Positions 10,266 through 21,016 of a stretch of DNA of 64,000 nucleotides are shown one piece after another; position 1 is the stretch's first letter, and each line of letters begins with the position of its first letter. The DNA is taken from the sequence record MW825358.1; one strand, written 5' to 3'. The position numbers and the translations under genes are program-made. The notes under the pieces were generated by a model, which worked only from the letters and a program-made list of their open reading frames with translations, searched no databases and was not told the origin of the DNA.

Positions 10266-11072
10266 ATGTCCCAGATCAAAACCCAAATCGACAAGCTCAT
10301 CGCCAATACGAACATTGCGGACCGCTACCGCACGATCCTGGCGCTGTATCCGAAGAACCCGCGCTACAAGGAGCTGCCGTATCACAACGCTGAGCACGTG
10401 CGGGCGGTGCTGAACCTGTTTGAGATCCTGCGCAAGCTTTCGGGCAAGGGCTTTAACAAGCAGCAGCTGAAAAACGTCGAACTGGCCCTGGCCTTCCACG
10501 ACATCAATCACAGCGGCTTTGGTGATGCCCACCAGGACGAAGAGGGTGAGACCAATATCGGTAAAGCCCTTGCTGCCTTCTACGCCTGGCAGGACGATAA
10601 GAAGCTCAGCACTGATGACCGTCACGCCGTGATTGCCTTCATCGAAGCTACGCGCTATCCGCACGACGAGGTGGCCGTGCCTGATGGCAGTCCGGATATC
10701 GATGCGTTGATCGGGCTGGTGCGCGATGCTGACATCCTCTGGGGCATGCTGCCGGGTAATGCAGAGCAGTGCATGATCGGTCTGTGGCTGGAACAGCGCA
10801 ATGCTGGTGCAGAGGTCTCCCAGGATGTCTTTGAGATCCTCAAGCGTCAGCTGCACTTCATCCGCGACTATCAACCCTTCACGGCCGCAGGGCGGACCTT
10901 CAAGAACGCCATGTTTGATCAGGCGACTCTGGCGTGGTCGCAGACAGCACTGGACTATCAGCGTCAGTTGGAACTGGCGGCACAGGTGAAAGACATGCCC
11001 GCAGCCGACATCCAGGCTTTGGCATATGCCTTGGCCAACAAGCACCGACTGGGTCGTTCCAGCTACCCGTAA
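10266..11072 (+). CDS. HD-domain phosphohydrolase with class I cyclic-nucleotide PDE-like signature
   Basis: PYHNAEH ... AFHDINHSG ... VRDAD. Confidence 0.8.
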   Translation: MSQIKTQIDKLIANTNIADRYRTILALYPKNPRYKELPYHNAEHVRAVLNLFEILRKLSGKGFNKQQLKNVELALAFHDINHSGFGDAHQDEEGETNIGKALAAFYAWQDDKKLSTDDRHAVIAFIEATRYPHDEVAVPDGSPDIDALIGLVRDADILWGMLPGNAEQCMIGLWLEQRNAGAEVSQDVFEILKRQLHFIRDYQPFTAAGRTFKNAMFDQATLAWSQTALDYQRQLELAAQVKDMPAADIQALAYALANKHRLGRSSYP

Positions 11073-11076
11073 CCAC

Positions 11077-11113
11077 GGCATAAAGGGAGGGCACGTAGCC
11101 CTCCTGATATGCC
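11077..11113. terminator. GGCATA..hairpin..TATGCC element
   Basis: GGAGGGC-ACGTA-GCCCTCC flanked by GGCATA/TATGCC. Confidence 0.65.
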
Positions 11114-11134
11114 TTTTCCTGGAATTGTTCAAAG

Positions 11135-11347
11135 ATGAAAACACGTGACCTTTCAGCCGGCATGTTCGGGTTCCTACTGATCACCAGTGGGGCTTTGCTC
11201 CTGTCGTGTCTGATCATGATGATCTGGGCGTTGGAGCTACTCTCCCAGGCCACCCCGGCTGCGGCATGGATGGCATTAGGAGTGGCGGCTCTCCAAGGCG
11301 CCATCGGTGTTGGGCTGGGGTACTACTTGGTTCACCGACTGCGCTAG
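11135..11347 (+). CDS. Small two-TM membrane protein
   Basis: 70 aa, two hydrophobic helices. Confidence 0.6.
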   Translation: MKTRDLSAGMFGFLLITSGALLLSCLIMMIWALELLSQATPAAAWMALGVAALQGAIGVGLGYYLVHRLR

Positions 11348-11390
11348 AGTCAATCCGCAGTAGATTTTTACCCACCTGCATTAGGTTGTA

Positions 11391-11525
11391 GGAGAACAGT
11401 CAGAGTAGCAAAACTGGATACAGATCGACGAGGTATGTATCAACCAGAGGATGCGGTGGGACCTTCTTGCCTGGCGGCTTGGGTCCTCACGCATAGAGAC
11501 CTGGTGTTGCTCTGACTGTTGCTCC
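11391..11525 (+). ncRNA. Candidate three-way-junction structured RNA
   Basis: 16-bp closing helix 11395-11410/11505-11520 with G-U pairs and two internal hairpins; no ORF. Confidence 0.5.
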
Positions 11526-11615
11526 CTTTCATTCAAAGTAAGTGCCTTCTTCTACTCTTCTTTTAAGAGGGGGAAATAGAGGAGGCGCACTTAACGTTTC
11601 TCGTTTTTAAGCAGG

Positions 11616-11701
11616 GCCCAAGTGGCGTAATGGCAGCCGCGGCAGACTCAAAATCTGTTGGTAGTGATACCGTGTCGGTTCGAGTCCGACCTTGGGCACC
11701 A
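11616..11701 (+). tRNA. tRNA-Leu(CAA)
   Basis: GCCCAAG/CTTGGGC acceptor, CT-CAA-AA loop, long variable arm, TTCGAGT T-loop, encoded CCA. Confidence 0.95.
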
Positions 11702-11718
11702 TTGCTTGACCGTTTCTT

Positions 11719-11894
11719 GAACGAGTGTCGTGTAGGTCTAGGCCGGACCTACGATTGATCTAACAGAGGCTCACGATAGACCTTTAGCACAGCTTGGTCA
11801 TTTATAGCACCAGATATCGAACCTCGAGTTCACTGTGTGGTCGACAATAACAGCGCCGTGAGGACAGAGAGTGAAATCCTCTCCTCGTTCACCA
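11719..11894 (+). ncRNA. tRNA-ended RNA with about 140-nt internal domain
   Basis: GAACGAG/CTCGTTC acceptor, U8, GAGAG-TGAAATC-CTCTC T-arm, A-CCA end. Confidence 0.6.
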
Positions 11895-11906
11895 TTTAGT
11901 AGCAAA

Positions 11907-11994
11907 CCGCGGGTGGTCAAATTAGGTAAAGGCAGCGGACTTAAAATCCGCCGGTGGAAACACCTTGAGGGTTCAAGTCCCTCTCCGCGGACCA
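11907..11994 (+). tRNA. tRNA-Leu(TAA)
   Basis: CCGCGGG/TCCGCGG acceptor region, CT-TAA-AA loop, variable arm, TTCAAGT T-loop, CCA. Confidence 0.95.
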
Positions 11995-12025
11995 TTCAAA
12001 ATTCCAGCCACCCGTGAGGTGTTCC

Positions 12026-12229
12026 ATGTTCGATTTCGACAGCCAAACGGATCTACCTACGCAACCGGGTTGGTATAACGTACTCATTGAAGGCGTCAGT
12101 AGTTTCATGCCGATCTATTTCCACTTTGATGGAGAGGAATGGCATCCTGATTTCTTCGAAGACGAAATTCGTGCAGGTAGAAAGTTTACGTGGTTTGAAG
12201 GAACGCGCCGTGACACACGTCCGTCCTGA
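12026..12229 (+). CDS. Small hypothetical protein within the tRNA cluster
   Basis: GAGGT RBS; 67 aa. Confidence 0.6.
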   Translation: MFDFDSQTDLPTQPGWYNVLIEGVSSFMPIYFHFDGEEWHPDFFEDEIRAGRKFTWFEGTRRDTRPS

Positions 12230-12509
12230 TTCACCACTATGTTCATCGGAGGGACTGGCGCGACAGGTCATTGAGGTCCCTGAGGACAAGTTCCTCTATA
12301 GCGACGTGATCCTTGAAAAGGTCAAGTCTTTTTTCGAAGCGCAGTCGGAAAGTAAAGCCATGGTGATTGGGGTCGACGTGTGTGGGTTTCTGTCTCGCCG
12401 CGAGGAAGGAAAATTGTTTGCCGCGTTGAGCGCGGAAGGCTTTGGTTGGACCATGGTAACATGGGATCCGAAGTCCAAGTTCACCGGGTTGTTGATTACC
12501 CGAAAGTAA
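12210..12509 (+). CDS. Hypothetical protein
   Basis: GAAGGA RBS before GTG 12210. Confidence 0.55.
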   Translation: MTHVRPDSPLCSSEGLARQVIEVPEDKFLYSDVILEKVKSFFEAQSESKAMVIGVDVCGFLSRREEGKLFAALSAEGFGWTMVTWDPKSKFTGLLITRK

Positions 12510-12550
12510 CACCTCAGTTGTGGACCGTTGCCGAAAGGCGAGAAGTTAAG

Positions 12551-12714
12551 TCAGTTTGTCGAGTGGTGGAATAGGTATACACGTGTTGGATCCCTCAGGG
12601 GTGAAGGTGCAGCCGGGAAGGGTACATCGCTCCCCGGTGCCTGACAGTGGGTGCGGCCTTAGGCCATAAGCGGGTTCGAGTCCCGCCTCAGAGTGCACTG
12701 TCCATACAAACTGA
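12551..12714 (+). ncRNA. tRNA-Leu-like RNA with expanded anticodon domain and altered acceptor
   Basis: Leu-type D-arm GTGGAATAGGTATACAC, GGCC-TTA-GGCC variable arm, GCGGG-TTCGAGT-CCCGC T-arm, outer helix TCAGTTTGT/ACAAACTGA. Confidence 0.55.
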
Positions 12715-12719
12715 TTTAA

Positions 12720-13100
12720 TGAAGTGTCCATGATCTGATGTGGTAATTCCAAGTGTAGCTGAGGGTGCAGGCTTGGATGGTCGAGACTTAAAGAACGCAG
12801 CGCCGCCAGTCTCCGACGTGATAAACCCTTGAGATCCCCCGATGACCACCGATGGTCTTGATGCCGGCTGCGGCCGGACAGAGATTAGTAGCAATCGGTG
12901 TAGGGGGTCTCTAAATTTGAATCCCTGACCAACCGTATGGCGAGGTAGGCCTCGTCACAAACCTGGGAACCTGAAGGTGGATTACCGGGCGTGCCAAACC
13001 TTTGAACTAGTGGTGTACTGTTAGCAAGACATTTGGTCGGGGCTTTGAGTGTTACCCCTACGATGGCACTGATCTTGCGATGTACTCCAAACCTTCACCC
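12720..13100 (+). ncRNA. Candidate large structured RNA
   Basis: About 380 nt with no sense ORF; several hairpins and long-range helices. Confidence 0.4.
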
Positions 13101-13123
13101 GCCGTTTTAGCTCAGTTGGCAGC
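13101..13123 (+). pseudogene. 5' fragment of an interrupted tRNA-Thr gene
   Basis: GCCGTTT-TA-GCTC-AGTTGG; acceptor strand complementary to AAACGGC at 13801-13807. Confidence 0.85.
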
Positions 13124-13144
13124 TTTTGGAATAGGATAGGTGGA

Positions 13145-13684
13145 ATGATCATTGATCTTGAAGAACCTTTCAAGTCAGTCTATTCAAAAGGCTACCTGAG
13201 AGTTGAAAGTGATGGTCGAAAATATGTGAGTCTCTACAATTGTGCAGGCGATCAAAGGTCAATCAGTTACGCGAGATATTTGTACAGCGTTCGCATGGGA
13301 TATGAGATTCCCGGTGACATTGAGATTGACCATAGAGACGGAGATAAGTCTAACGATAGTTTCGACAACCTCCGACCGATGACAATCCAAATGCATCGAG
13401 ATAAGACTTATTTCGAGCGACTGAACAAAGATTGGGTTGATCTCGTTTGTCCTTGCTGTACAGAAACTTTCCGAAGGTCTTCTCGCTATCTTAGAGATAA
13501 GAGAAGTCAGGGTCAGGTCGAGTTTTATTGTAGTCGCAGTTGCTCCACCAAAATGAACACCCCCATGAAAAAACCGCTGGAAGTGATCGAGCAGATTAGA
13601 GAACTAAAGGCTGAAGGAAAATCATCTTACTTTATTGCTAGCGCTTTAGGTGTAGCTAGAAACACGGTGATGAAGCACTGGTAA
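13145..13684 (+). CDS. HNH homing endonuclease with Zn finger and C-terminal HTH
   Basis: EIDHRDGDKSNDSFDNL HNH motif; CPCC/CSRSC; IASALGVARNTV. Confidence 0.9.
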   Translation: MIIDLEEPFKSVYSKGYLRVESDGRKYVSLYNCAGDQRSISYARYLYSVRMGYEIPGDIEIDHRDGDKSNDSFDNLRPMTIQMHRDKTYFERLNKDWVDLVCPCCTETFRRSSRYLRDKRSQGQVEFYCSRSCSTKMNTPMKKPLEVIEQIRELKAEGKSSYFIASALGVARNTVMKHW

Positions 13685-13686
13685 TT

Positions 13687-13769
13687 GCTGGGATGGCTGA
13701 GTGGCCGAAAGCACCAACCTTGTAAGTTGGTATACCACATCGTCAGTTCGAATCTGACTCCCAGCACCA
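13687..13769 (+). tRNA. tRNA-Thr(TGT) with class-II-like body
   Basis: GCTGGGA/TCCCAGC acceptor, CCAAC-CTTGTAA-GTTGG anticodon arm, TTCGAAT T-loop, A-CCA. Confidence 0.88.
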
Positions 13770-13772
13770 TCG

Positions 13773-13811
13773 ATCAGTAGGTCCTCGGTTCGATTCCGAG
13801 AAACGGCACCA
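13773..13811 (+). pseudogene. 3' fragment of an interrupted tRNA-Thr gene
   Basis: ATCAGT-AGGTC-CTCGG-TTCGATT-CCGAG-AAACGGC-A-CCA. Confidence 0.88.
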
Positions 13812-13823
13812 ATTGTTTTAAAC

Positions 13824-13943
13824 GGACCAGCAGCTCGCCCGGCGAGAGCGCAGGTACAGACGCGGAAGTAGTGTGGGTTCGATTCCCATGTCGCTTGGAC
13901 GCAATCCCCTCCCTGAGGTTAGGTTCGAATCCTATCTGGTCCA
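13824..13943 (+). ncRNA. tRNA-like RNA or pseudo-tRNA with a second T-arm nested in the anticodon position
   Basis: GGACCAG/CTGGTCC acceptor, GCTC/GAGC D-stem, terminal TAGG-TTCGAAT-CCTA and internal GTGGG-TTCGATT-CCCAT. Confidence 0.55.
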
Positions 13944-13958
13944 TCAGTGTTGTAAAAC

Positions 13959-14048
13959 GGAGAGTTGGCCGAGAGGATTAAGGCACCGGTCTTGAAAACC
14001 GACGTAGGGGAAACCCTGCCGTGAGTTCGAATCTCACACTCTCCGCCA
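13959..14048 (+). tRNA. tRNA-Ser(TGA)
   Basis: GGAGAGT/ACTCTCC acceptor, CT-TGA-AA loop, long variable arm, G-CCA. Confidence 0.95.
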
Positions 14049-14210
14049 ATTTCGTTGCGGTGACTTGATGTAGTGGGCAAACACCCGAGTGTACAAGCGC
14101 TAGAGCGGTCAGAACTCTAGCGCTTGTACTCATGGTGAGTATAAGGAGACTTAACTAACATTACTTGTTAGTCTCTCAAATCTACCTCAACACTATCGAG
14201 GAGTTTTACA

Positions 14211-15173
14211 ATGAATAACATCAACGATCAGCTGGTCGAATACCTCAGTCACCCTCTGAACATCGGTGTTGCCCGCGCACCCTTTTCGGACATGGTCTGT
14301 ACGGTACCTGGATCAGAACTTGACAAGCTATGGGATCATCCCACCGGTTACCCTGTCGGATTGCTCGAACTGAGCTATAACGAACTGACTGCGATCTTCT
14401 TTACGGGACAAGTCTTCGGCAACAATAATCGTTCTCTGTGTCATGTCTCTCAGGGCGAGAACGGTCGCGTGGAGGACCATGTCTCATGTGACGTTCGAAG
14501 CGACAAGCGTGAAGGGATGAAAGTGTCCTTTCGAGTAACGCGCCGGCTTGAACAAGGTTGGTGTAATTACGGGCTCAGTGCAAGACAGTTGGTTGTCGAG
14601 GAGGCTAACCGCACGAGCTTGAAAAACCGGATGACTTTCCGCCCCTTTATGGATAAAGAAGGCAAACCGCAGTGGCAGTTGATGCGTCGTGAGATTCTTC
14701 AGATCGAATCTTATCCACCGGCGGAAGATACCGTTCCGGCCTATCTCAACTATCTCTACAAGAATCTCGAGCGCACCATCGGGGATGCCTTGAAGGTGAA
14801 TGAGGATGGGTACTTGGTCGAGACCGGTGTTGATGGTGAGATCCAGTGCTGGTGGGAAGACGTAGTGGCCGAGATGATCGAGACGGGTCTGCAACACCAC
14901 CCGTTGGGCGTGTACAACTACATTCCTACTGATCCGAGCTTGATTGACTGGTTCTTCGAGGTTAAGGCTCAAGCCGCCAATGGTGCGTTTGATCACACCA
15001 CCAGCAGCATTGAAACGGTGTCCAAGCGCATTGCCGATGTCGGTACACGGTTTGCTGAACTGACTGAACCTTTCGTTCAGAAAGCGGCACGCGAAAATCG
15101 AGCACTAGCACGTGAGATCAAGCAGCAGGACGAGCATGGTTCTCCGTTGGACGAAGAAGATCTGGTAGACTAA
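14211..15173 (+). CDS. Hypothetical protein
   Basis: 320-aa ORF with GAGGAG RBS. Confidence 0.8.
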   Translation: MNNINDQLVEYLSHPLNIGVARAPFSDMVCTVPGSELDKLWDHPTGYPVGLLELSYNELTAIFFTGQVFGNNNRSLCHVSQGENGRVEDHVSCDVRSDKREGMKVSFRVTRRLEQGWCNYGLSARQLVVEEANRTSLKNRMTFRPFMDKEGKPQWQLMRREILQIESYPPAEDTVPAYLNYLYKNLERTIGDALKVNEDGYLVETGVDGEIQCWWEDVVAEMIETGLQHHPLGVYNYIPTDPSLIDWFFEVKAQAANGAFDHTTSSIETVSKRIADVGTRFAELTEPFVQKAARENRALAREIKQQDEHGSPLDEEDLVD

Positions 15174-15184
15174 GTTGTAAAGAC

Positions 15185-15216
15185 TACAGCCCCGCCTTTG
15201 TGGGCGGGGCTGTATG
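15185..15216. terminator. GC-rich hairpin + TATG
   Basis: TACAGCCCCGCC-TTTGTG-GGCGGGGCTGTA-TG. Confidence 0.7.
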
Positions 15217-15362
15217 TTGCTGTCCAATCTCGACACCATCCCCAGTGAACGCCAGTGCTAGGCTAGACTTAAAACACCAGTAAGCCGCCCTAAGTGTTGA
15301 ACTGTAGTTTCTTTTTACCTAACGTGCTGACTGTGTGTAGGAGGCAGTCGGCTTCACCTACA

Positions 15363-15406
15363 GTTGGAGATAGACTCCAGCTTCACTTACCACGATAGGA
15401 ACTATC
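15363..15406 (+). promoter_or_regulatory. Twin-hairpin translational leader (ATAGA loop + GGAA loop)
   Basis: TGGAG-ATAGA-CTCCA then GATAG-GAA-CTATC abutting ATG. Confidence 0.55.
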
Positions 15407-16498
15407 ATGGACACGCAACACGATTACCTTGTTTTCATTGGTCGCTTTGAACCCTTCCACAACGGACACATGGCAGTGGCGCGTCGGGCTTTGCAGCTCG
15501 GCAAGAAACTGATCGTTTTGATTGGCTCGGCCCACAAGCCGCGCTCCATCAAGAACCCTTGGATCGCTGAGGAACGGTCAGTGATGATCCGCACCGCTCT
15601 GGCTGAGCACCAAGATCGCTTGATCATCGGTCAGCTGCGCGATCACCTGTACAACGAAGACCAGTGGATCGCTGATGTGCAACGGGCCGTGCGTGAGGCT
15701 GTGGTCGACTTTGACGGCCGCATGAGCTTTGACAAACAGTCCATTCGCATGATCGGTCAGAACAAGGATGAGTCAAGCTACTACCTGCAGATGTTTCCGC
15801 AGTGGCCTGCCATTGACGTCAGTCACACGGCAGTGCAATCGGCCACCGATCTGCGCAACTACTTGTTCGATGCTGGACGGGTGGAAACGCACGGGGGTAT
15901 GAACATGATCCGCGCCAACGTACCGCGGCCTGTGTTTGAAATGATCGATGCCTTCCGCCACAGCTCGCCAGACTTTAATCAGCTCGTGCGTGAGCACAAG
16001 TTCATCAAGGACTATAAGTCAGGCTGGGACACCGCGCCGTACGCGCCGACCTTTACCACCACCGATGCGGTTGTGACCTACTCTGGTCATGTCTTGTTGG
16101 TGCGACGTAGGGCCGAGCCGGGGAAAGGACTGTGGGCACTTCCGGGTGGGTTTGTAAACCCCAAAGAAAGTATCTACGATTCGTGTATCCGCGAGTTGCG
16201 TGAGGAGACCCGACTGCGGATTCCCGCATCGATCCTCAAGGGTTCTCTCAAGGCCAAAGAAGTCTTCGATCATCCTGACCGCAGTCTGCGTGGACGCACC
16301 ATCACCCACGCGTTCCACTTCCACTTTGCCGCAGGTGAACTCCCGCCGGTCAAGGGAGGGGACGATGCTGATAAGGCCCGCTGGGTCCCGATCAGTGAAG
16401 TGCTGGAAATGGGGCCGCGTCTGTATGAGGATCATCTCGACATCATCGAGTTCTTCCTGGGCCAAACCGCCAGTCAGCGGCAGTCGTTGATCGACTAA
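15407..16498 (+). CDS. nadM: Bifunctional NMN adenylyltransferase / ADP-ribose pyrophosphatase (NadM-NUDIX)
   Basis: GRFEPFHNGH nucleotidyltransferase motif; GGFVNPKESIYDSCIRELREET Nudix box. Confidence 0.95.
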   Translation: MDTQHDYLVFIGRFEPFHNGHMAVARRALQLGKKLIVLIGSAHKPRSIKNPWIAEERSVMIRTALAEHQDRLIIGQLRDHLYNEDQWIADVQRAVREAVVDFDGRMSFDKQSIRMIGQNKDESSYYLQMFPQWPAIDVSHTAVQSATDLRNYLFDAGRVETHGGMNMIRANVPRPVFEMIDAFRHSSPDFNQLVREHKFIKDYKSGWDTAPYAPTFTTTDAVVTYSGHVLLVRRRAEPGKGLWALPGGFVNPKESIYDSCIRELREETRLRIPASILKGSLKAKEVFDHPDRSLRGRTITHAFHFHFAAGELPPVKGGDDADKARWVPISEVLEMGPRLYEDHLDIIEFFLGQTASQRQSLID

Positions 16499-16509
16499 CT
16501 GACCACACC

Positions 16510-16558
16510 CCGGCGGATAGACCGCCGGTTCTCAACCCGACTTGAAGGAACTTCAGTC
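16510..16558 (+). promoter_or_regulatory. Twin-hairpin translational leader (second copy)
   Basis: CCGGCGG-ATAGA-CCGCCGG then TGAAG-GAA-CTTCA upstream of ATG. Confidence 0.55.
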
Positions 16559-17959
16559 ATGCTGTACAACAATCTGATTCTCAACACCGATAGTTACAAA
16601 GCCAGTCACTGGACCCAGTATCCGGCCAACACCGAAACGACGTTCTTCTACGCCGAATCGCGTGGTGGGGTACATGACCAGACCGTGTTCTTCGGCCTGC
16701 AGACGATCTTGATGGATTATCTGAGCCGACCGATCACCCATGCTGATGTGGATGAAGCCCGTGACCTGTTTGCAGGTCATGGTGAACCGTTCAATGAAGC
16801 AGGCTGGCGGTACATCGTTGATACCCATGGTGGCTTTCTGCCTGTGCGCATCCGCGCTGTGGCTGAAGGGACGGTCGTGCCGACGCATAACGCGCTCTAC
16901 ACGGTCGAGTCCACCGATCCGGCTTGCTACTGGGTCCCTTCGTACCTGGAAACCTTGCTCATGCGCACCTGGTACACCACCACGGTGGCTACTGTGAGCT
17001 GGGCGTGCAAACAAGTGATCTCCAAGCACCTGTACAAGACCTGCGATGCCCCCGAAGAACAGCTGCCGTTTAAGCTGCACGACTTCGGCGCCCGTGGTGT
17101 GTCCAGCACAGAGTCCTCGGCCTTAGGTGGTCTGGCTCATCTGGTCAACTTCCAAGGCACTGACACCGTGCTGGCCTTGGTGGCTGCCCGTCGCTATTAC
17201 CACTGTGAGATGGCAGGCTATTCGGTTCCGGCCGCAGAGCACGCCACGATCACCCCGTGGGGTCGCGCCGGTGAGGTTGAGGCCTACCGGAACATGCTGA
17301 AGCAATTTGGCCGTGAAGGTGGGATCGTCTCGGTGGTGTCAGACAGCTATGATATCTTCAACGCCGTCTCTAAGATCTGGGGCAATGCCCTGCGTCAAGA
17401 GGTGATCGACTCAGGGGCCACCTTGGTCATTCGTCCGGATTCGGGCGAGCCGGTGGAGATCGTGCTGGAATGTCTGGAGCGGATCGATGCGGCTTTTGGC
17501 CACACCATCAACGCCAAGGGCTTTAAGGTCTTGAACCAAGTCCGTGTCCTGCAAGGTGATGGGATTGATCCGGCCATGCTGGAAAAGATCCTGGAGGCTT
17601 CCACGGCACAAGGCTACTCAGCTGAGAACCTGGTGTTTGGGATGGGCGGCGGGTTGCTGCAAAAGGTCAACCGTGATACGCAAAAGTTCGCACTCAAGTG
17701 TTCGGCGGCGTTGGTGAACGGACAGTGGATCGATGTCTACAAGGACCCGATCACCGACAGTGGGAAGCGCTCCAAGCGCGGACGCCTGTCGCTGTTCCGT
17801 CATCGCGAATACGGCACTTATCGGACCTTGCGTTTGGACGAGCCGACCCCGGCTGGCTTTGACGATGTCATGGTCACGGTGTGGGAGAACGGTAAGCAAT
17901 TGGTGCATCAGACGTTGGCCGATATCCGGCTGCGTGCCGATGCGCTGCGTAGGAAGTAA
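16559..17959 (+). CDS. nadV: Nicotinamide phosphoribosyltransferase (NAMPT)
   Basis: TDSYKASH, LHDFGARG, PAAEH, SVVSDSYD, IRPDSG, QGDG, FGMGGGLLQ. Confidence 0.95.
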   Translation: MLYNNLILNTDSYKASHWTQYPANTETTFFYAESRGGVHDQTVFFGLQTILMDYLSRPITHADVDEARDLFAGHGEPFNEAGWRYIVDTHGGFLPVRIRAVAEGTVVPTHNALYTVESTDPACYWVPSYLETLLMRTWYTTTVATVSWACKQVISKHLYKTCDAPEEQLPFKLHDFGARGVSSTESSALGGLAHLVNFQGTDTVLALVAARRYYHCEMAGYSVPAAEHATITPWGRAGEVEAYRNMLKQFGREGGIVSVVSDSYDIFNAVSKIWGNALRQEVIDSGATLVIRPDSGEPVEIVLECLERIDAAFGHTINAKGFKVLNQVRVLQGDGIDPAMLEKILEASTAQGYSAENLVFGMGGGLLQKVNRDTQKFALKCSAALVNGQWIDVYKDPITDSGKRSKRGRLSLFRHREYGTYRTLRLDEPTPAGFDDVMVTVWENGKQLVHQTLADIRLRADALRRK

Positions 17960-18224
17960 TACCACTTGTGAACCATCCGAATGATCAGCCCCTGATCTGA
18001 TCGGTAGATGTGTTTCGCAACACCCGGAAAACTGTAGGTGGATCACCGGGCCGTGGCAGTAAGAGACCGGCATCAATCCCGGCTCCCAGATATAACGAGT
18101 GGTTGGTTGTTAGACAGGATTCATGGGTAACTGGTTGCCGCCCCCTGCCGATGCCAACGGAACCTTCATCATTTTGTTTATCTTCCATCCGGCCGCAGTT
18201 AGGGCCTCCAAAGAAGTGATCCAC

Positions 18225-18704
18225 ATGAGCATCTTAGCAGGATTGAAGCGTTACGAACTTGCACCCGCCGAATGGCCCAAGGTCCGCCCCAGAATTCCAG
18301 CTGTACAATTGGAAGAAGGTAGTGAGGTACTGTATCTCCCGGGCGCTGCCGTATTTGTCCTAGCTGCATTCGATTCTGCTTTCAGCACAGGGAAAATTGT
18401 CGAGCAATTGAGACTTTACTGGCCTATCCCCGTGGATGTGAAGGTCAAAGAAGATGAACTACTGCGGTTCTTTGAGAACCAAGTGGAGCTGTTCAATGCG
18501 CAATTGACTCATTTGCCAGAACTGAGGGTCTGTGGTTTCGACCAGACTCGTCGTCAGTCAGACCCAGACGGCGGCTACCGCTATGTCACCAGGCGTTACT
18601 CGTGCCCACTCACGCCCTTTGAAAAGGTGTTCCGAAATGACCATGAGGGCCTCGGCGGTCCTTACGGCATGTTCATGAAACCAGTAAAACCAAATTCAAA
18701 CTGA
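18225..18704 (+). CDS. Hypothetical protein
   Basis: 159-codon ORF. Confidence 0.65.
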   Translation: MSILAGLKRYELAPAEWPKVRPRIPAVQLEEGSEVLYLPGAAVFVLAAFDSAFSTGKIVEQLRLYWPIPVDVKVKEDELLRFFENQVELFNAQLTHLPELRVCGFDQTRRQSDPDGGYRYVTRRYSCPLTPFEKVFRNDHEGLGGPYGMFMKPVKPNSN

Positions 18705-18705
18705 T

Positions 18706-18965
18706 GGTACGTCGGTAATATCCGCCGCTTGCGGCAGTGAGCATGCCGACGTATTGCAGTCCCCACACCGCCCGTTACGATGGTTCCGCAATTTACCACT
18801 CAGCGGGAGTAGTCGGTTTACAACGCTTATTGCACTTAGAGGTCAAGGTAGGGTCAGGAGGAGTCCTGATGTCCCCCAAGACTTGGGTCAATACGCTGGA
18901 CCTAACGTGAGCGGTTGGTGGGTGTTTATTAAGGCAAGGACGTATCATGTACGTCCTTTCTTTCC
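18706..18965 (+). ncRNA. Candidate structured RNA ending in an intrinsic terminator
   Basis: TACGTCGG/CCGACGTA, CCCACACCGC/GCGGTTGGTGGG, AAGGACGTA/TACGTCCTT + pyrimidine tail. Confidence 0.45.
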
Positions 18966-18978
18966 TTGTGAGAATCTA

Positions 18979-19278
18979 ATGGCACTTCCCCGTCGCTTTA
19001 AGCCACAGCGACTTGACCGGCTAGAAGAGGTTGTTCTGCCCGGCTGTAGTTACGCTGAACAGATCGTGCAGGCAACCGTGGCGTTGTTTAACGATGACCC
19101 GAGCGCTACCAAGCAACTGGTGGCCATTGACCTGATGGCCCTGACCAAGCTGGGCACTGACCGGACTGAGGAGAACAAACTCCACAGTCTGTTCAAAGAC
19201 GCCGGCTACAGTTTCCAGATTGTCCGCTTCGGTGGTAAGACCGGACAAGACATCGGCGTGCTGGTGACCAAGGATTAA
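18979..19278 (+). CDS. Hypothetical protein
   Basis: 99-codon ORF. Confidence 0.65.
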   Translation: MALPRRFKPQRLDRLEEVVLPGCSYAEQIVQATVALFNDDPSATKQLVAIDLMALTKLGTDRTEENKLHSLFKDAGYSFQIVRFGGKTGQDIGVLVTKD

Positions 19279-19283
19279 GTCCC

Positions 19284-19520
19284 ATGGACAGCGGCGATAA
19301 GGCACGCTTGCTCAGCGCGCTGGATAAGGTCACCGATGTCACCTTGCCGGTGACGGATAAACTCAAAATTCAACTGGACCCACCGATTGTGGATCCAACG
19401 CTCAAACCTGCAGCACTGGCAGCGACTTTCAAGCTCAATGCCCAGCTGTCCAAAACCCTAAGTGCCGGACTCTCACGTAACGGTGAGAACTGGCAACTAA
19501 AGGTCACAAAGAAGTTCTAA
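19284..19520 (+). CDS. Hypothetical protein
   Basis: 78 aa, AAGGA upstream. Confidence 0.6.
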   Translation: MDSGDKARLLSALDKVTDVTLPVTDKLKIQLDPPIVDPTLKPAALAATFKLNAQLSKTLSAGLSRNGENWQLKVTKKF

Positions 19521-19850
19521 GTGTTCCCCGCAAGGGGATCTGCACCGGAGTTAGTTCCTCCGAGGTCAATCGCAGGGCGAGCCCTTTTCGACTTTACACG
19601 CCACTCGTACAGTCCCAGATGGGGCGGAGTTGCGTGACTTGGTGCCTACGCATTGAGGTGTTGACTTGATCTGGCTTGGGTACCGACTAAAAGAACGCTA
19701 ACACTTCGGGCTTATTGTCCGGGTGGGAAGAGACAAGCAGGCGTGCACACCTGCCGAGGTTCTTACCTCTGATCTTCTTGGATTGGTCTCCTTAGCCTGT
19801 AGCATGCATGCGTTTCGACCAAACGCGAGCGTGCTATGGGGTAAGTGATC
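19521..19850 (+). ncRNA. Candidate structured RNA
   Basis: About 330 nt, no ORF on either strand in the track, dense hairpins including a GCAA tetraloop. Confidence 0.45.
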
Positions 19851-19853
19851 TAT

Positions 19854-19880
19854 AGGGATGTCGTCAAGTGGTCTAAGGAT
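19854..19880 (+). pseudogene. 5' fragment of an interrupted tRNA-Gln gene
   Basis: AGGGATG-TC-GTC-AAGTGGTCTAAG-GAT; acceptor strand complementary to CATCCCT at 20421-20427. Confidence 0.85.
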
Positions 19881-19885
19881 GCTAG

Positions 19886-20308
19886 ATGGGTGATATAAGT
19901 CCTCAGTTAAGCCAATACCGTCGAAGAATAGAGACTTTCAAAGAAGTCCTTGGCGGAAAGTGTTGTCGATGTGGCGGAACTGTCAATCTAGAGTTCGACC
20001 ATCGCGACCCCAATGAGAAGTATTTTACACTCACCATGGGTGTGGCCCGAAGTTATCCAGCTGAAGTACTTTTGAGTGAACTAGAAAAATGTCAGTTGCT
20101 ATGTGAGGACTGCCATCTTCAAAAAACTTTAGATGAGAGCGGCAGAGCCGAGCATGGTAGCGCTGGGATGTATCGACATCACGGTTGTCGATGTAACGTT
20201 TGTTGTGAGGCCAATAGAGAGTACTTGAGAAACTACTACGCTCAAAAAACGGCCGATAACCCAAACTACCGGCGTGAACAACGACAACGTCTGAGATTAA
20301 AACAATAG
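19886..20308 (+). CDS. HNH endonuclease
   Basis: CCRCG...LEFDHRDP...CQLLCEDCH; C-terminal HGCRCNVC. Confidence 0.9.
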   Translation: MGDISPQLSQYRRRIETFKEVLGGKCCRCGGTVNLEFDHRDPNEKYFTLTMGVARSYPAEVLLSELEKCQLLCEDCHLQKTLDESGRAEHGSAGMYRHHGCRCNVCCEANREYLRNYYAQKTADNPNYRREQRQRLRLKQ

Positions 20309-20315
20309 TTTTTAC

Positions 20316-20387
20316 AGGGGATTGGCCAAGCGGTAAGGCATCGCCCTTTGACGGCGACATGCGTTGGTTCGAATCCAACATCCCCTA
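20316..20387 (+). tRNA. tRNA-Gln(TTG), CCA not encoded
   Basis: AGGGGAT/ATCCCCT acceptor, GCC-AAGCGGTAA-GGC D-arm, TCGCC-CTTTGAC-GGCGA, GTTGG-TTCGAAT-CCAAC. Confidence 0.9.
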
Positions 20388-20394
20388 TTCCTTG

Positions 20395-20431
20395 AGGGCA
20401 TTCGCAGGTTCAAATCCTGCCATCCCTGCCA
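20395..20431 (+). pseudogene. 3' fragment of an interrupted tRNA-Gln gene
   Basis: GAGGG-CATTC-GCAGG-TTCAAAT-CCTGC-CATCCCT-G-CCA. Confidence 0.85.
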
Positions 20432-20719
20432 CTGTAATAAAAGAAGATGAGTGCACCAGTGAAGGGGTGGCACTACTAGCGAGTTGATGGCTATAAACCG
20501 TATCGCAACCTGCAACGTCCGACCAGCGTATCTTCTTTTTTTTTGTATCTCCCAGGTCTAAGACGGGAGAAGAGTGAACAAAGGAGTGTGGGAGGTAAGG
20601 CTCTGGAAGAGCCGGCGCGTGTTTGAGGTCACCGTGCCCACGGGATCTTAAGCATTGCGAAGTGTGAGCCCGGGACCAGACAATTGTGTCTGGCCCAAAC
20701 TTACGGAGTGAATTGAAGT

Positions 20720-21016
20720 ATGAAGACCACCACGATCTCTGATCTGAACCGCCCCGCTGACCTGGCCGCCCTCGGGATCACTCCCGATAACGCGAACTCA
20801 CTCCAGCTCGTCAGTGTTCAGCTCAAGGATGGACGGAACGTCGACGTCAATCGCAACTTCGCATCTGTCGGTAACAACGACAAACAGATGGTTGCCAACT
20901 ACAACCACAACGGCCAGGACTTCCGCTTCGTTGCGGATACCACCAGCCGCCAGGTCTCGTTGGAGAACTATCAGGAAAGCGATATCACCGGTTACACCCT
21001 TGGTATCACCGCATAA
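20720..21016 (+). CDS. Hypothetical protein
   Basis: 98 aa, GGAG upstream, followed by hairpin. Confidence 0.75.
   Translation: MKTTTISDLNRPADLAALGITPDNANSLQLVSVQLKDGRNVDVNRNFASVGNNDKQMVANYNHNGQDFRFVADTTSRQVSLENYQESDITGYTLGITA

Follow-up and report, generated by a model that had tools for sequence, protein, structure and literature searches.

Candidate cassettes of an HNH nuclease gene and a tRNA gene nested in interrupted tRNA genes of Xanthomonas phage LucasX

Two tRNA loci of LucasX share a nested arrangement

Xanthomonas phage vB_XciM_LucasX is a 305-kb jumbo phage of X. citri. We analyzed a stretch of 64,000 nucleotides (nt) of its sequence record, MW825358.1, referred to below as the window (window position equals record position minus 124000). 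At two loci of the window, designated the Thr locus and the Gln locus, the remnants of an interrupted transfer RNA (tRNA) gene enclose an HNH nuclease gene and a second, complete tRNA gene, here called the inner gene (Table 1). The GenBank annotation of this region consists of hypothetical proteins and tRNA-Leu, Leu, Thr and Ser genes; the nuclease gene of the Thr locus, LUCX_148, is labeled merely "hypothetical", and the open reading frame (ORF) of the second nuclease is absent from the record, as are both tRNA pseudogenes. The published description of the whole genome gives five tRNA genes (two Leu, Thr, Ser and Gln) and a single homing endonuclease, LUCX_172 (PMC9009655). An assembly artifact was considered and rejected, being unlikely for two parallel structures at the reported coverage of 237.7x (PMC9009655).

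Table 1 Features of the Thr and Gln loci and of the adjoining sequence (window coordinates).
Feature	Position	Strand	Evidence
Outer tRNA-Thr (UGU-type) pseudogene	13101..13811	+	Remnant alignments, truncated Rfam match, 7/7 acceptor pairing
Predicted HNH homing-endonuclease gene LUCX_148 (HNH1), 179 amino acids, intact	13145..13684	+	Pfam, PHROG, fold
Inner complete tRNA-Thr(UGU), 83 nt	13687..13769	+	ARAGORN, Rfam 61.7 bits
Outer tRNA-Gln-type pseudogene	19854..20432	+	7/7 acceptor complementarity, remnant similarity
Predicted second HNH endonuclease ORF (HNH2), 140 amino acids, intact, unannotated in GenBank	19886..20308	+	phrog_4234, weak Pfam HNH
Inner complete tRNA-Gln(UUG)	20316..20387	+	ARAGORN, Rfam 67.3 bits
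tRNA-like debris, uncertain	13824..13946	+	T-arm and acceptor scans

The two remnants of each outer gene were handled separately in all comparisons. At the Thr locus, the damage to the outer gene amounts to one insertion, which comprises the nuclease gene and the inner tRNA gene, and one short internal deletion. Alignment revealed that both remnants are colinear with intact tRNA-Thr(UGU) genes of Escherichia coli and of Stenotrophomonas phage Marzo. The first 19 nt of the outer gene recur at the start of bacterial tRNA genes; 83 of the 108 genes called are Thr, and among these 108 the closest 3′ parts, with 31/36 positions identical to the outer remnant, are nearly all from Thr(tgt) genes. The 3′ remnant is recognized as a 5′-truncated Rfam tRNA match (21.9 bits, E=0.005), and its best match in E. 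coli is tRNA-Thr; the 5′ remnants of both loci, searched alone, are too short and gave no Rfam match. The acceptor strands (GCCGTTT/AAACGGC) are complementary at 7/7 positions and the CCA end is still encoded, and an anticodon arm cannot be built from the remaining sequence. A reading made earlier from the DNA letters alone (hereafter the sequence-only reading) had joined the two pieces into one tRNA-Thr(UGU)-type gene with a perfect acceptor stem and a missing anticodon, and these comparisons support it on both points.

The inner tRNA-Thr(UGU) gene starts 2 nt past the HNH1 stop codon and is the sole tRNA-Thr gene of LucasX. Its Rfam score compares with a gathering score of 29, ARAGORN also calls it as tRNA-Thr(tgt), and its fold has a z of −2.8. 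It has the pairs G1–C72 and C2–G71, a UGU anticodon, a D stem of 3 base pairs, an 11-nt variable region and an encoded CCA. Identity to the outer gene is limited to 12/22 and 20/36 positions, in agreement with the earlier description of a complete and divergent tRNA-Thr(UGU) between the remnants. This 83-nt type is conserved in phages of Xanthomonas, Pseudomonas and Vibrio and in metagenomes, and three of its stems are compensatorily changed between LucasX, Pseudomonas phage SYP and Vibrio phage 2.275.O; in the latter two phages, the annotation gives no nuclease gene beside it. With its class-II-like 3-base-pair D stem and 11-nt variable region, it represents a phage type of tRNA-Thr(UGU), of which further copies lie at L009:2501-2583, L010:1448-1530, L258:598-680 and L260:2497-2579 (L numbers denote the contigs and genome segments compared).

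The Gln locus has the same layout. Its outer gene likewise carries one insertion and one short internal deletion, and it still encodes a G-CCA end, that is, a discriminator G followed by CCA. The 5′ remnant is closest to tRNA-Gln(ttg) genes, among them the one in the related phage RTH11. For the 3′ remnant, a truncated match to the tRNA clan was obtained (E=0.042), and Gln(ttg) ranks second behind a Leu gene whose T arm matches. The inner tRNA-Gln(UUG) gene starts 7 nt past the HNH2 stop codon, is the sole tRNA-Gln gene of LucasX and also scores far above the Rfam gathering score of 29; it is identical to the outer gene at 13/27 and 13/36 positions. Both inner genes, Thr and Gln, have the predicted properties of functional tRNAs.

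To estimate how often such an arrangement would arise by chance, we scanned the window for a T arm with a 7/7 Watson–Crick acceptor partner 250–3000 nt upstream and a D-arm context. Exactly two pairs were retrieved, those of the Thr and Gln loci, compared with 0.037 expected over 300 shuffles; two pairs occurred in 0/300 shuffles. The Thr and Gln loci are two instances of one geometry with unrelated nucleases.

The two nucleases differ in family and share a foreign base composition

HNH1 matches the Pfam family HNH_3 with 30.7 bits, above the cut-off of 24.8, and phrog_14913 with E=1.4e-36, and it has a weak match to Pfam HTH_38. The protein consists of an N-terminal β-sheet, the HNH motif, four conserved cysteines and a C-terminal helix-turn-helix; residues D62, H63 and N75 and the four cysteines are invariant across 14 homologues. 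The AlphaFold model, with a predicted local distance difference test (pLDDT) value of 88.6, retrieved I-HmuI (1u3e) as its best fold in the PDB (probability 1.00, E=0.0096, 119 columns, 16% identity). The global template modeling (TM) score of this pair is only 0.31, a low value that is expected for an elongated modular protein. A search against the sequences of solved structures returned spurious helix-turn-helix or repeat matches alone. By motif and predicted fold, HNH1 fits an I-HmuI-like HNH (His-Me finger) homing endonuclease; the HNH gene proposed to lie between the Thr remnants is thus corroborated by family matches and by structure, and LUCX_148 can now be labeled HNH nuclease.

HNH2 matches phrog_4234 (E=9.5e-29) and Pfam HNH (16.1 bits, below the cut-off), and its D-H and Cys/His columns are invariant in its homologues. 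BLASTP revealed no significant match between HNH1 and HNH2. The HNH1 gene has a G+C content of 0.43 and a third-position G+C content (GC3) of 0.43, compared with a GC3 of 0.59–0.74 in neighboring genes, as anticipated by the sequence-only reading, which had described this gene as AT-richer. HNH2 has a GC3 of 0.40. Both HNH ORFs lie approximately 0.2–0.3 below their neighbors in GC3, and their base composition is foreign.

Nuclease sub-clades are tied to single tRNA isotypes

Homologues of HNH1 at 30–40% identity are found in many large phages, among them RaK2-like phages, CBB, Yersinia fHe-Yen9, Acinetobacter phages, N4-like phages and others. Homologues of HNH2 occur in tRNA arrays of mycobacteriophages and of Stenotrophomonas and Streptomyces phages, where they often overlap the next tRNA gene. 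Overall, 21 of 43 HNH1-family loci lie in tRNA arrays, with a tRNA gene starting at the end of the ORF in 12; the corresponding counts for the HNH2 family are 51 of 83 loci and 35. The distance between ORF and tRNA gene in the homologues ranges from 1–8 nt to overlap, and in RaK2, Turkey5 and Totoro the tRNA gene begins 3–10 nt after the ORF of the HNH1 homologue.

Closer HNH1 relatives (50–66% identity) were obtained from a large protein collection, and their contigs were then fetched. Each of the five distinct homologues that reach at least 53% identity is followed by a tRNA-Thr(UGU) gene starting 1–8 nt downstream, and the two closest carry the 83-nt tRNA-Thr, identical to the LucasX inner gene at 77/83 and 72/83 positions. 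Homologues that share 50% identity or less with HNH1 are linked to tRNA genes for Gly, Arg or Met. Because the homologues at or above 53% are all linked to tRNA-Thr and those at or below 50% to other isotypes, the nuclease sub-clades are, as judged from these genomes, tied to one tRNA isotype each. On three contigs (L261, L263 and L264), the HNH and tRNA-Thr pair stands without detectable outer remnants. As a separate observation, L269:1501-2767 contains tandem HNH_3 nuclease genes with an 85-nt tRNA-Met(cat) gene between them.

The nested geometry recurs with matching isotypes

As a check, the sequence-only reading named a search of phage genomes for a half tRNA gene, an HNH gene, a complete tRNA gene and the other half, with matching specificity. 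This arrangement was recovered at the Gln locus of LucasX itself and on the contigs L258/L259, L260, L031 and L027. Contigs L258/L259 and L260 come from two other metagenomic phages. On L258 and L259, whose HNH protein is 63% identical to HNH1, the nuclease gene and an 83-nt tRNA gene lie within a tRNA-Thr-like gene that they interrupt (L258:13-719 plus CCA). On L260 (HNH protein 66% identical), the 3′ remnant is likewise present, and a 5′ remnant matches it. The cassettes of L258/L259 and L260 are homologous to that of LucasX, with approximately 67–69% DNA identity across a segment that runs from the HNH ORF through the 3′ remnant; in L258, the homology (67%) extends from the nuclease start through the end of this remnant. 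The outer acceptor arms of the three alleles, GCCGTTT/AAACGGC in LucasX, GCTGCCT/AGGCAGC in L258 and GCCGGTA/TATCGGC in L260, differ at several positions, and each pair is complementary, perfectly or nearly so, within itself. None of the ORFs that flank the cassettes of L258 and L260 has a homologue in the window. Retention of paired stems through double changes is not expected of dead DNA at a divergence of one third. On the simplest reading of these alignments, homologous cassettes occupy different, once-functional tRNA-Thr alleles.

Further cases were identified among HNH1-family loci of the IMG/VR database. In L031, a tRNA-Met(CAU) gene lies behind the nuclease gene within an interrupted CAU-type gene from which zero nucleotides have been lost. 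In L027, a tRNA-Ala(GGC) gene lies within an interrupted tRNA-Ala gene, and the G3:U70 pair is present in both. L029 has a tRNA-Ile(UAU) gene in an interrupted CAU-type gene, for which Met and Ile2 are indistinguishable. One-sided structures were observed in L033 and L018, where a 5′ remnant alone lies upstream of the nuclease and tRNA genes (Leu and Leu in L033), and several other HNH1-family loci have 5′ tRNA fragments just 5′ of the nuclease start. The interruption falls in a common region of the tRNA gene in all these cases, nested and one-sided alike.

Inner and outer isotypes agree in 4/4 assignable nested cases (Thr, Gln, Met and Ala). Based on the isotype frequencies of 164 phage tRNAs, chance agreement is approximately 0.068 per pair and approximately 2e-5 for all four. 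Together with the clade-level linkage to tRNA-Thr, this concordance means that the nuclease gene is tightly linked to a same-function copy of the destroyed gene.

Other tRNA-derived sequences were seen in the genomes compared. Aeromonas phage Aszh-1 (MN871442.1; L004:3524-3951) has a complete tRNA-Met gene and, approximately 300 nt later, a 50-nt copy of its 3′ part with 100% identity, a one-sided duplication such as insertions into tRNA genes leave behind. Fragments resembling tRNA and mini-structures with paired acceptors, none of them called by ARAGORN, are present in Vibrio phage 1.084.O (L003), Serratia phage Totoro (L005) and RTH11 (L050:3700-3990), around HNH homologues and within tRNA clusters. 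Phage tRNA arrays seem rich in tRNA debris.

Relatives of the loci and their surroundings

Relatives of the Thr locus were sought through the flanking proteins LUCX_149 and LUCX_147. No relatives were found in IMG/VR; the phage collection yielded RTH11 only, and one metagenome contig, L055, was recovered. The sequence-only reading had looked to related phages for an intact tRNA-Thr allele at the same locus, and none was found there, as RTH11 and L055 are both without these tRNA genes. Where LucasX has the Thr block, RTH11 has a small ORF and some short noncoding sequence; the tRNA cluster of RTH11 is located elsewhere and is without Thr. L055 has the upstream gene of LucasX, yet the Thr block is missing. 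LucasX and RTH11 are also homologous upstream of the Gln locus, up to a point just before the outer gene. A 75-nt noncoding block (19778-19852; L050:725-802) is 81% identical in the two phages, ends just 5′ of the outer tRNA-Gln-type gene and, in RTH11, precedes a protein gene. The tRNA-Gln gene of RTH11 was rejected as an empty site; the gene type is related, but the position is non-syntenic. A search of viral contigs with the outer Thr 3′ remnant alone gave no match. The L031 3′ remnant has one other copy in IMG/VR, on L057, and this was also rejected as an empty site, being again a fragment in a different context.

A second noncoding block, 12510-12830, is conserved between LucasX, RTH11 and two metagenome contigs (L002:6264-6600, L055:1560-1740, L258:2180-2337). 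It contains a T-arm-like hairpin at 12670-12686, followed on its 3′ side by two hairpins with five compensatory pairs across three sequences, and it has no Rfam family match. The block lies upstream of the cassette in LucasX and downstream of it in L258.

Directly downstream of the outer Thr gene, positions 13824-13946 form a 123-nt shell whose acceptor pairs at 7/7 positions, whose start resembles a D arm and which contains two T-arm motifs. Neither ARAGORN nor Rfam calls this segment, the phage collection contains no homologue of it, and its fold is not better than those of shuffled sequences. An earlier nested event, since decayed, may have left it behind. The tRNA block is adjoined by NadM-Nudix (nicotinamide mononucleotide adenylyltransferase/ADP-ribose pyrophosphatase) and nicotinamide phosphoribosyltransferase genes (15407-16498 and downstream); this nicotinamide adenine dinucleotide (NAD) salvage pair is syntenic in RTH11.

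Discussion

We consider it probable that each locus is a two-gene selfish cassette, composed of an HNH nuclease gene and a divergent tRNA gene, that resides in a resident tRNA gene for the matching amino acid. The recurrence of the geometry, the isotype match and the clade-level linkage favor the corresponding proposal of the sequence-only reading for the Thr locus, in which a nuclease and replacement-tRNA cassette was inserted in a tRNA-Thr gene and replaced it. Several observations weigh against this interpretation. For neither outer gene did we find an uninterrupted allele at the LucasX loci, and searching viral, genome and metagenome contigs with both Thr remnants and an open gap retrieved no exact parent. 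The isotype of the outer Gln gene is assigned from moderate similarity. Close relatives of the Gln case are lacking: HNH2 shares 50% identity with its nearest homologue, which accompanies a tRNA-Val gene, and the 83 HNH2-family loci yielded no further nested case, the nested candidates having proved to be false positives on inspection. Finally, L258 carries the noncoding block conserved in LucasX, so that it may be a distant relative of LucasX and the recurrence may in part reflect vertical descent.

The main rival explanation is a single old capture event. It holds that the structure is an immobile repair scar, in which the nuclease gene and its neighboring tRNA gene were captured once by illegitimate end-joining and then inherited vertically; the isotype match would follow from the habit of free-standing nuclease genes of adjoining a resistant copy of their own target. 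The absence of an empty site and the noncoding block common to L258 and LucasX are in line with it, as are the equal cassette lengths of the two and the equal overall length of their interrupted genes (707 nt), consistent with a single ancestral event, and the pairs without outer remnants in L261, L263 and L264 would then represent the ordinary "home" arrangement. However, the three outer alleles differ and yet stay complementary, which is unexpected for dead DNA at approximately 33% divergence, their flanking ORFs are unrelated, the extent of the internal loss varies between copies, and both nuclease ORFs are intact with conserved catalytic residues. We regard a single capture as unlikely on balance. 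The conserved pairing could also be explained if the outer remnants were kept as an RNA element, a tRNA-like handle that spans the cassette and directs the processing or stabilizes the message of the nuclease. Acceptor pairing and an encoded CCA are indeed kept in three diverged copies through compensatory differences, and expression of T4 SegB is thought to be governed by tRNA processing (PMC2330249). Repeated entry into different live alleles would, however, give an equal pattern; L029 keeps far less of the 3′ remnant and the one-sided L033 and L018 keep none, a 0.7-kb loop weakens the pairing, and there is no structure signal beyond the remnants. We assign this explanation little probability.

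An account without any role for the nucleases has less weight still. Recombination between conserved tRNA segments in a shrinking array, with the nucleases as bystanders, would agree with the five tRNA genes of LucasX against at least 14 in its relative RTH11 and with the other tRNA debris, at 13824-13946 and in RTH11. It leaves unexplained why colinear remnants of one gene exactly enclose a nuclease and a tRNA gene, twice, and it accounts neither for the isotype concordance and the clade-specific linkage nor for a foreign composition that is confined to the nuclease ORFs; we find it very improbable. A self-splicing intron or an integrase-type element that leaves the outer gene functional was examined as well. 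An intron is how nuclease-bearing elements classically leave a tRNA gene unharmed. Escherichia phage Turkey5 has an Intron_gpI match of 95.1 bits in a phage tRNA gene beside an HNH homologue, and integrative elements leave tRNA 3′ copies, of which the identical 3′ tRNA-Met fragment of L057 may be one. At the LucasX loci, Rfam found no intron family match at E≤1 within 10500-21000, and the remnants are without an anticodon arm. There is no integrase gene, the HNH gene being the sole ORF in the insert, and the interrupted gene retains a 5′ remnant and encloses an entire second tRNA gene. Both a group I intron and an integrase element were rejected on these grounds, and we give an outer gene that still functions almost no credence. 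The Turkey5 intron (PQ471516.1; L006:1623-1936, E=2.8e-25) is of group I and lies in or next to the tRNA gene directly 5′ of the HNH homologue; the corresponding tRNA-Met gene of RaK2 is uninterrupted.

If each locus is a selfish cassette, the following course of events can be envisaged. The nuclease would be made from the transcript of the tRNA operon, with its ribosome-binding site formed by, or beside, the 5′ remnant and its message ending at the point where the inner tRNA is excised. In a mixed infection, it would cut the ordinary, uninterrupted isoacceptor gene of a cassette-free phage in one region. Repair of the break from the cassette-bearing genome would copy in the nuclease gene together with the linked tRNA gene, and the two ends of the cut gene would stay behind as flanking remnants. 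The linked tRNA gene would be spared, since it differs from the outer gene in the arms that the nuclease would read. Because the linked tRNA would restore the decoding function lost by the insertion, invasion would cost the phage little. What we infer in this scheme is that the nuclease cuts the outer allele, that the inner allele resists it and that repair takes this route. On a wider view, which we hold only tentatively, phage tRNA arrays would harbor natural cleave-and-rescue elements, in which nucleases have co-diversified with a cleavage-proof tRNA and enter, kill and replace the isoacceptor genes of rivals at one preferred region. Each sub-clade would own one isotype and would drive turnover of the tRNA repertoire and the spread of odd types, such as the 83-nt tRNA-Thr(UGU).

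Free-standing homing nucleases attack alleles from which they are absent, and repair of the cut then copies them in. In a tRNA cluster, SegB of T4, a GIY-YIG enzyme, behaves in this way: it recognizes and cuts tRNA genes and homes with neighboring tRNA genes (PMC2330249; PMC13096335). Its ORF abuts the next tRNA gene, and processing thereby limits SegB expression (PMC2330249). HNH genes have also been implicated in the diversity of tRNA repertoires (PMC5966550, PMC6409571, PMC8421152). Like SegB and the F-Tfl HNH nucleases of T5, the LucasX nuclease genes lie in a tRNA cluster and abut the next tRNA gene, at distances of 2 and 7 nt. Unlike SegB and F-Tfl, which lie between tRNA genes and home without leaving a split gene, the LucasX nuclease and tRNA genes lie inside a dead isoacceptor gene, and the nuclease clades are tied to one isotype; the LucasX nucleases also belong to a protein family other than that of SegB. 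The HNH1 model resembles I-HmuI, the HNH nickase of Bacillus phage SPO1, in being elongated and modular and in ending in a helix-turn-helix. I-HmuI, however, is carried by a self-splicing intron and its host gene keeps working, whereas LucasX has no intron and a second gene would restore the function.

Linkage of a nuclease to a variant of the gene that it attacks also has precedents. The T-even pairs SegF/gene 56 and MobE/nrdB reportedly consist of a nuclease beside a resistant variant of its target, both of which are co-converted. The LucasX pairs share this linkage, but the targets of SegF and MobE are protein genes and their conversion needs flanking homology, whereas pairs of the LucasX type are nested in the target and have unrelated flanks. 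In fractured genes, a homing-endonuclease gene lies between two gene halves that are rescued by split inteins (PMC2677866). These too reportedly combine a nuclease that splits a gene with a device that restores function (PMC2677866). Their rescue is reported to proceed by protein trans-splicing of the halves, whereas LucasX retains two dead halves alongside a complete spare gene.

Synthetic cleave-and-rescue drives employ a nuclease that destroys a gene and a tightly linked, cleavage-proof copy of that gene. The LucasX element likewise links a nuclease to a copy of the destroyed gene, the resistance of the inner copy being our inference. The drives are engineered, aim at essential targets and spread by killing non-carriers; the LucasX element, by contrast, is natural, its target is a dispensable phage tRNA gene, and its spread would occur by copying into a break. 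Integrative elements that target tRNA genes resemble it in being inserted in a tRNA gene whose damage is compensated. They encode an integrase and duplicate the 3′ part alone, whereas LucasX has no integrase, both remnants and a whole divergent tRNA gene. The association of nucleases with tRNA arrays is known, and in the open-access literature we found no description of a nuclease and an isoacceptor tRNA gene nested in the gene that they replaced; the sequence-only reading, which did not recognize the arrangement as described, agrees with this outcome.

Homing nucleases usually avoid harm to their host through self-splicing introns or inteins, or through an intergenic position. If our interpretation is true, a nuclease inside the destroyed gene, accompanied by a spare copy of that gene, would constitute a third solution, and the logic of engineered cleave-and-rescue would have arisen naturally at least twice, with unrelated nucleases. 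Phage tRNAs counter bacterial defenses that cleave tRNA (PMC13096335). The cassettes would provide a concrete mechanism for the shuffling of phage tRNA repertoires and would explain unusual phage tRNA variants through selection to escape nucleases. They would likewise explain the tRNA gene fragments that litter phage genomes and confuse their annotation.

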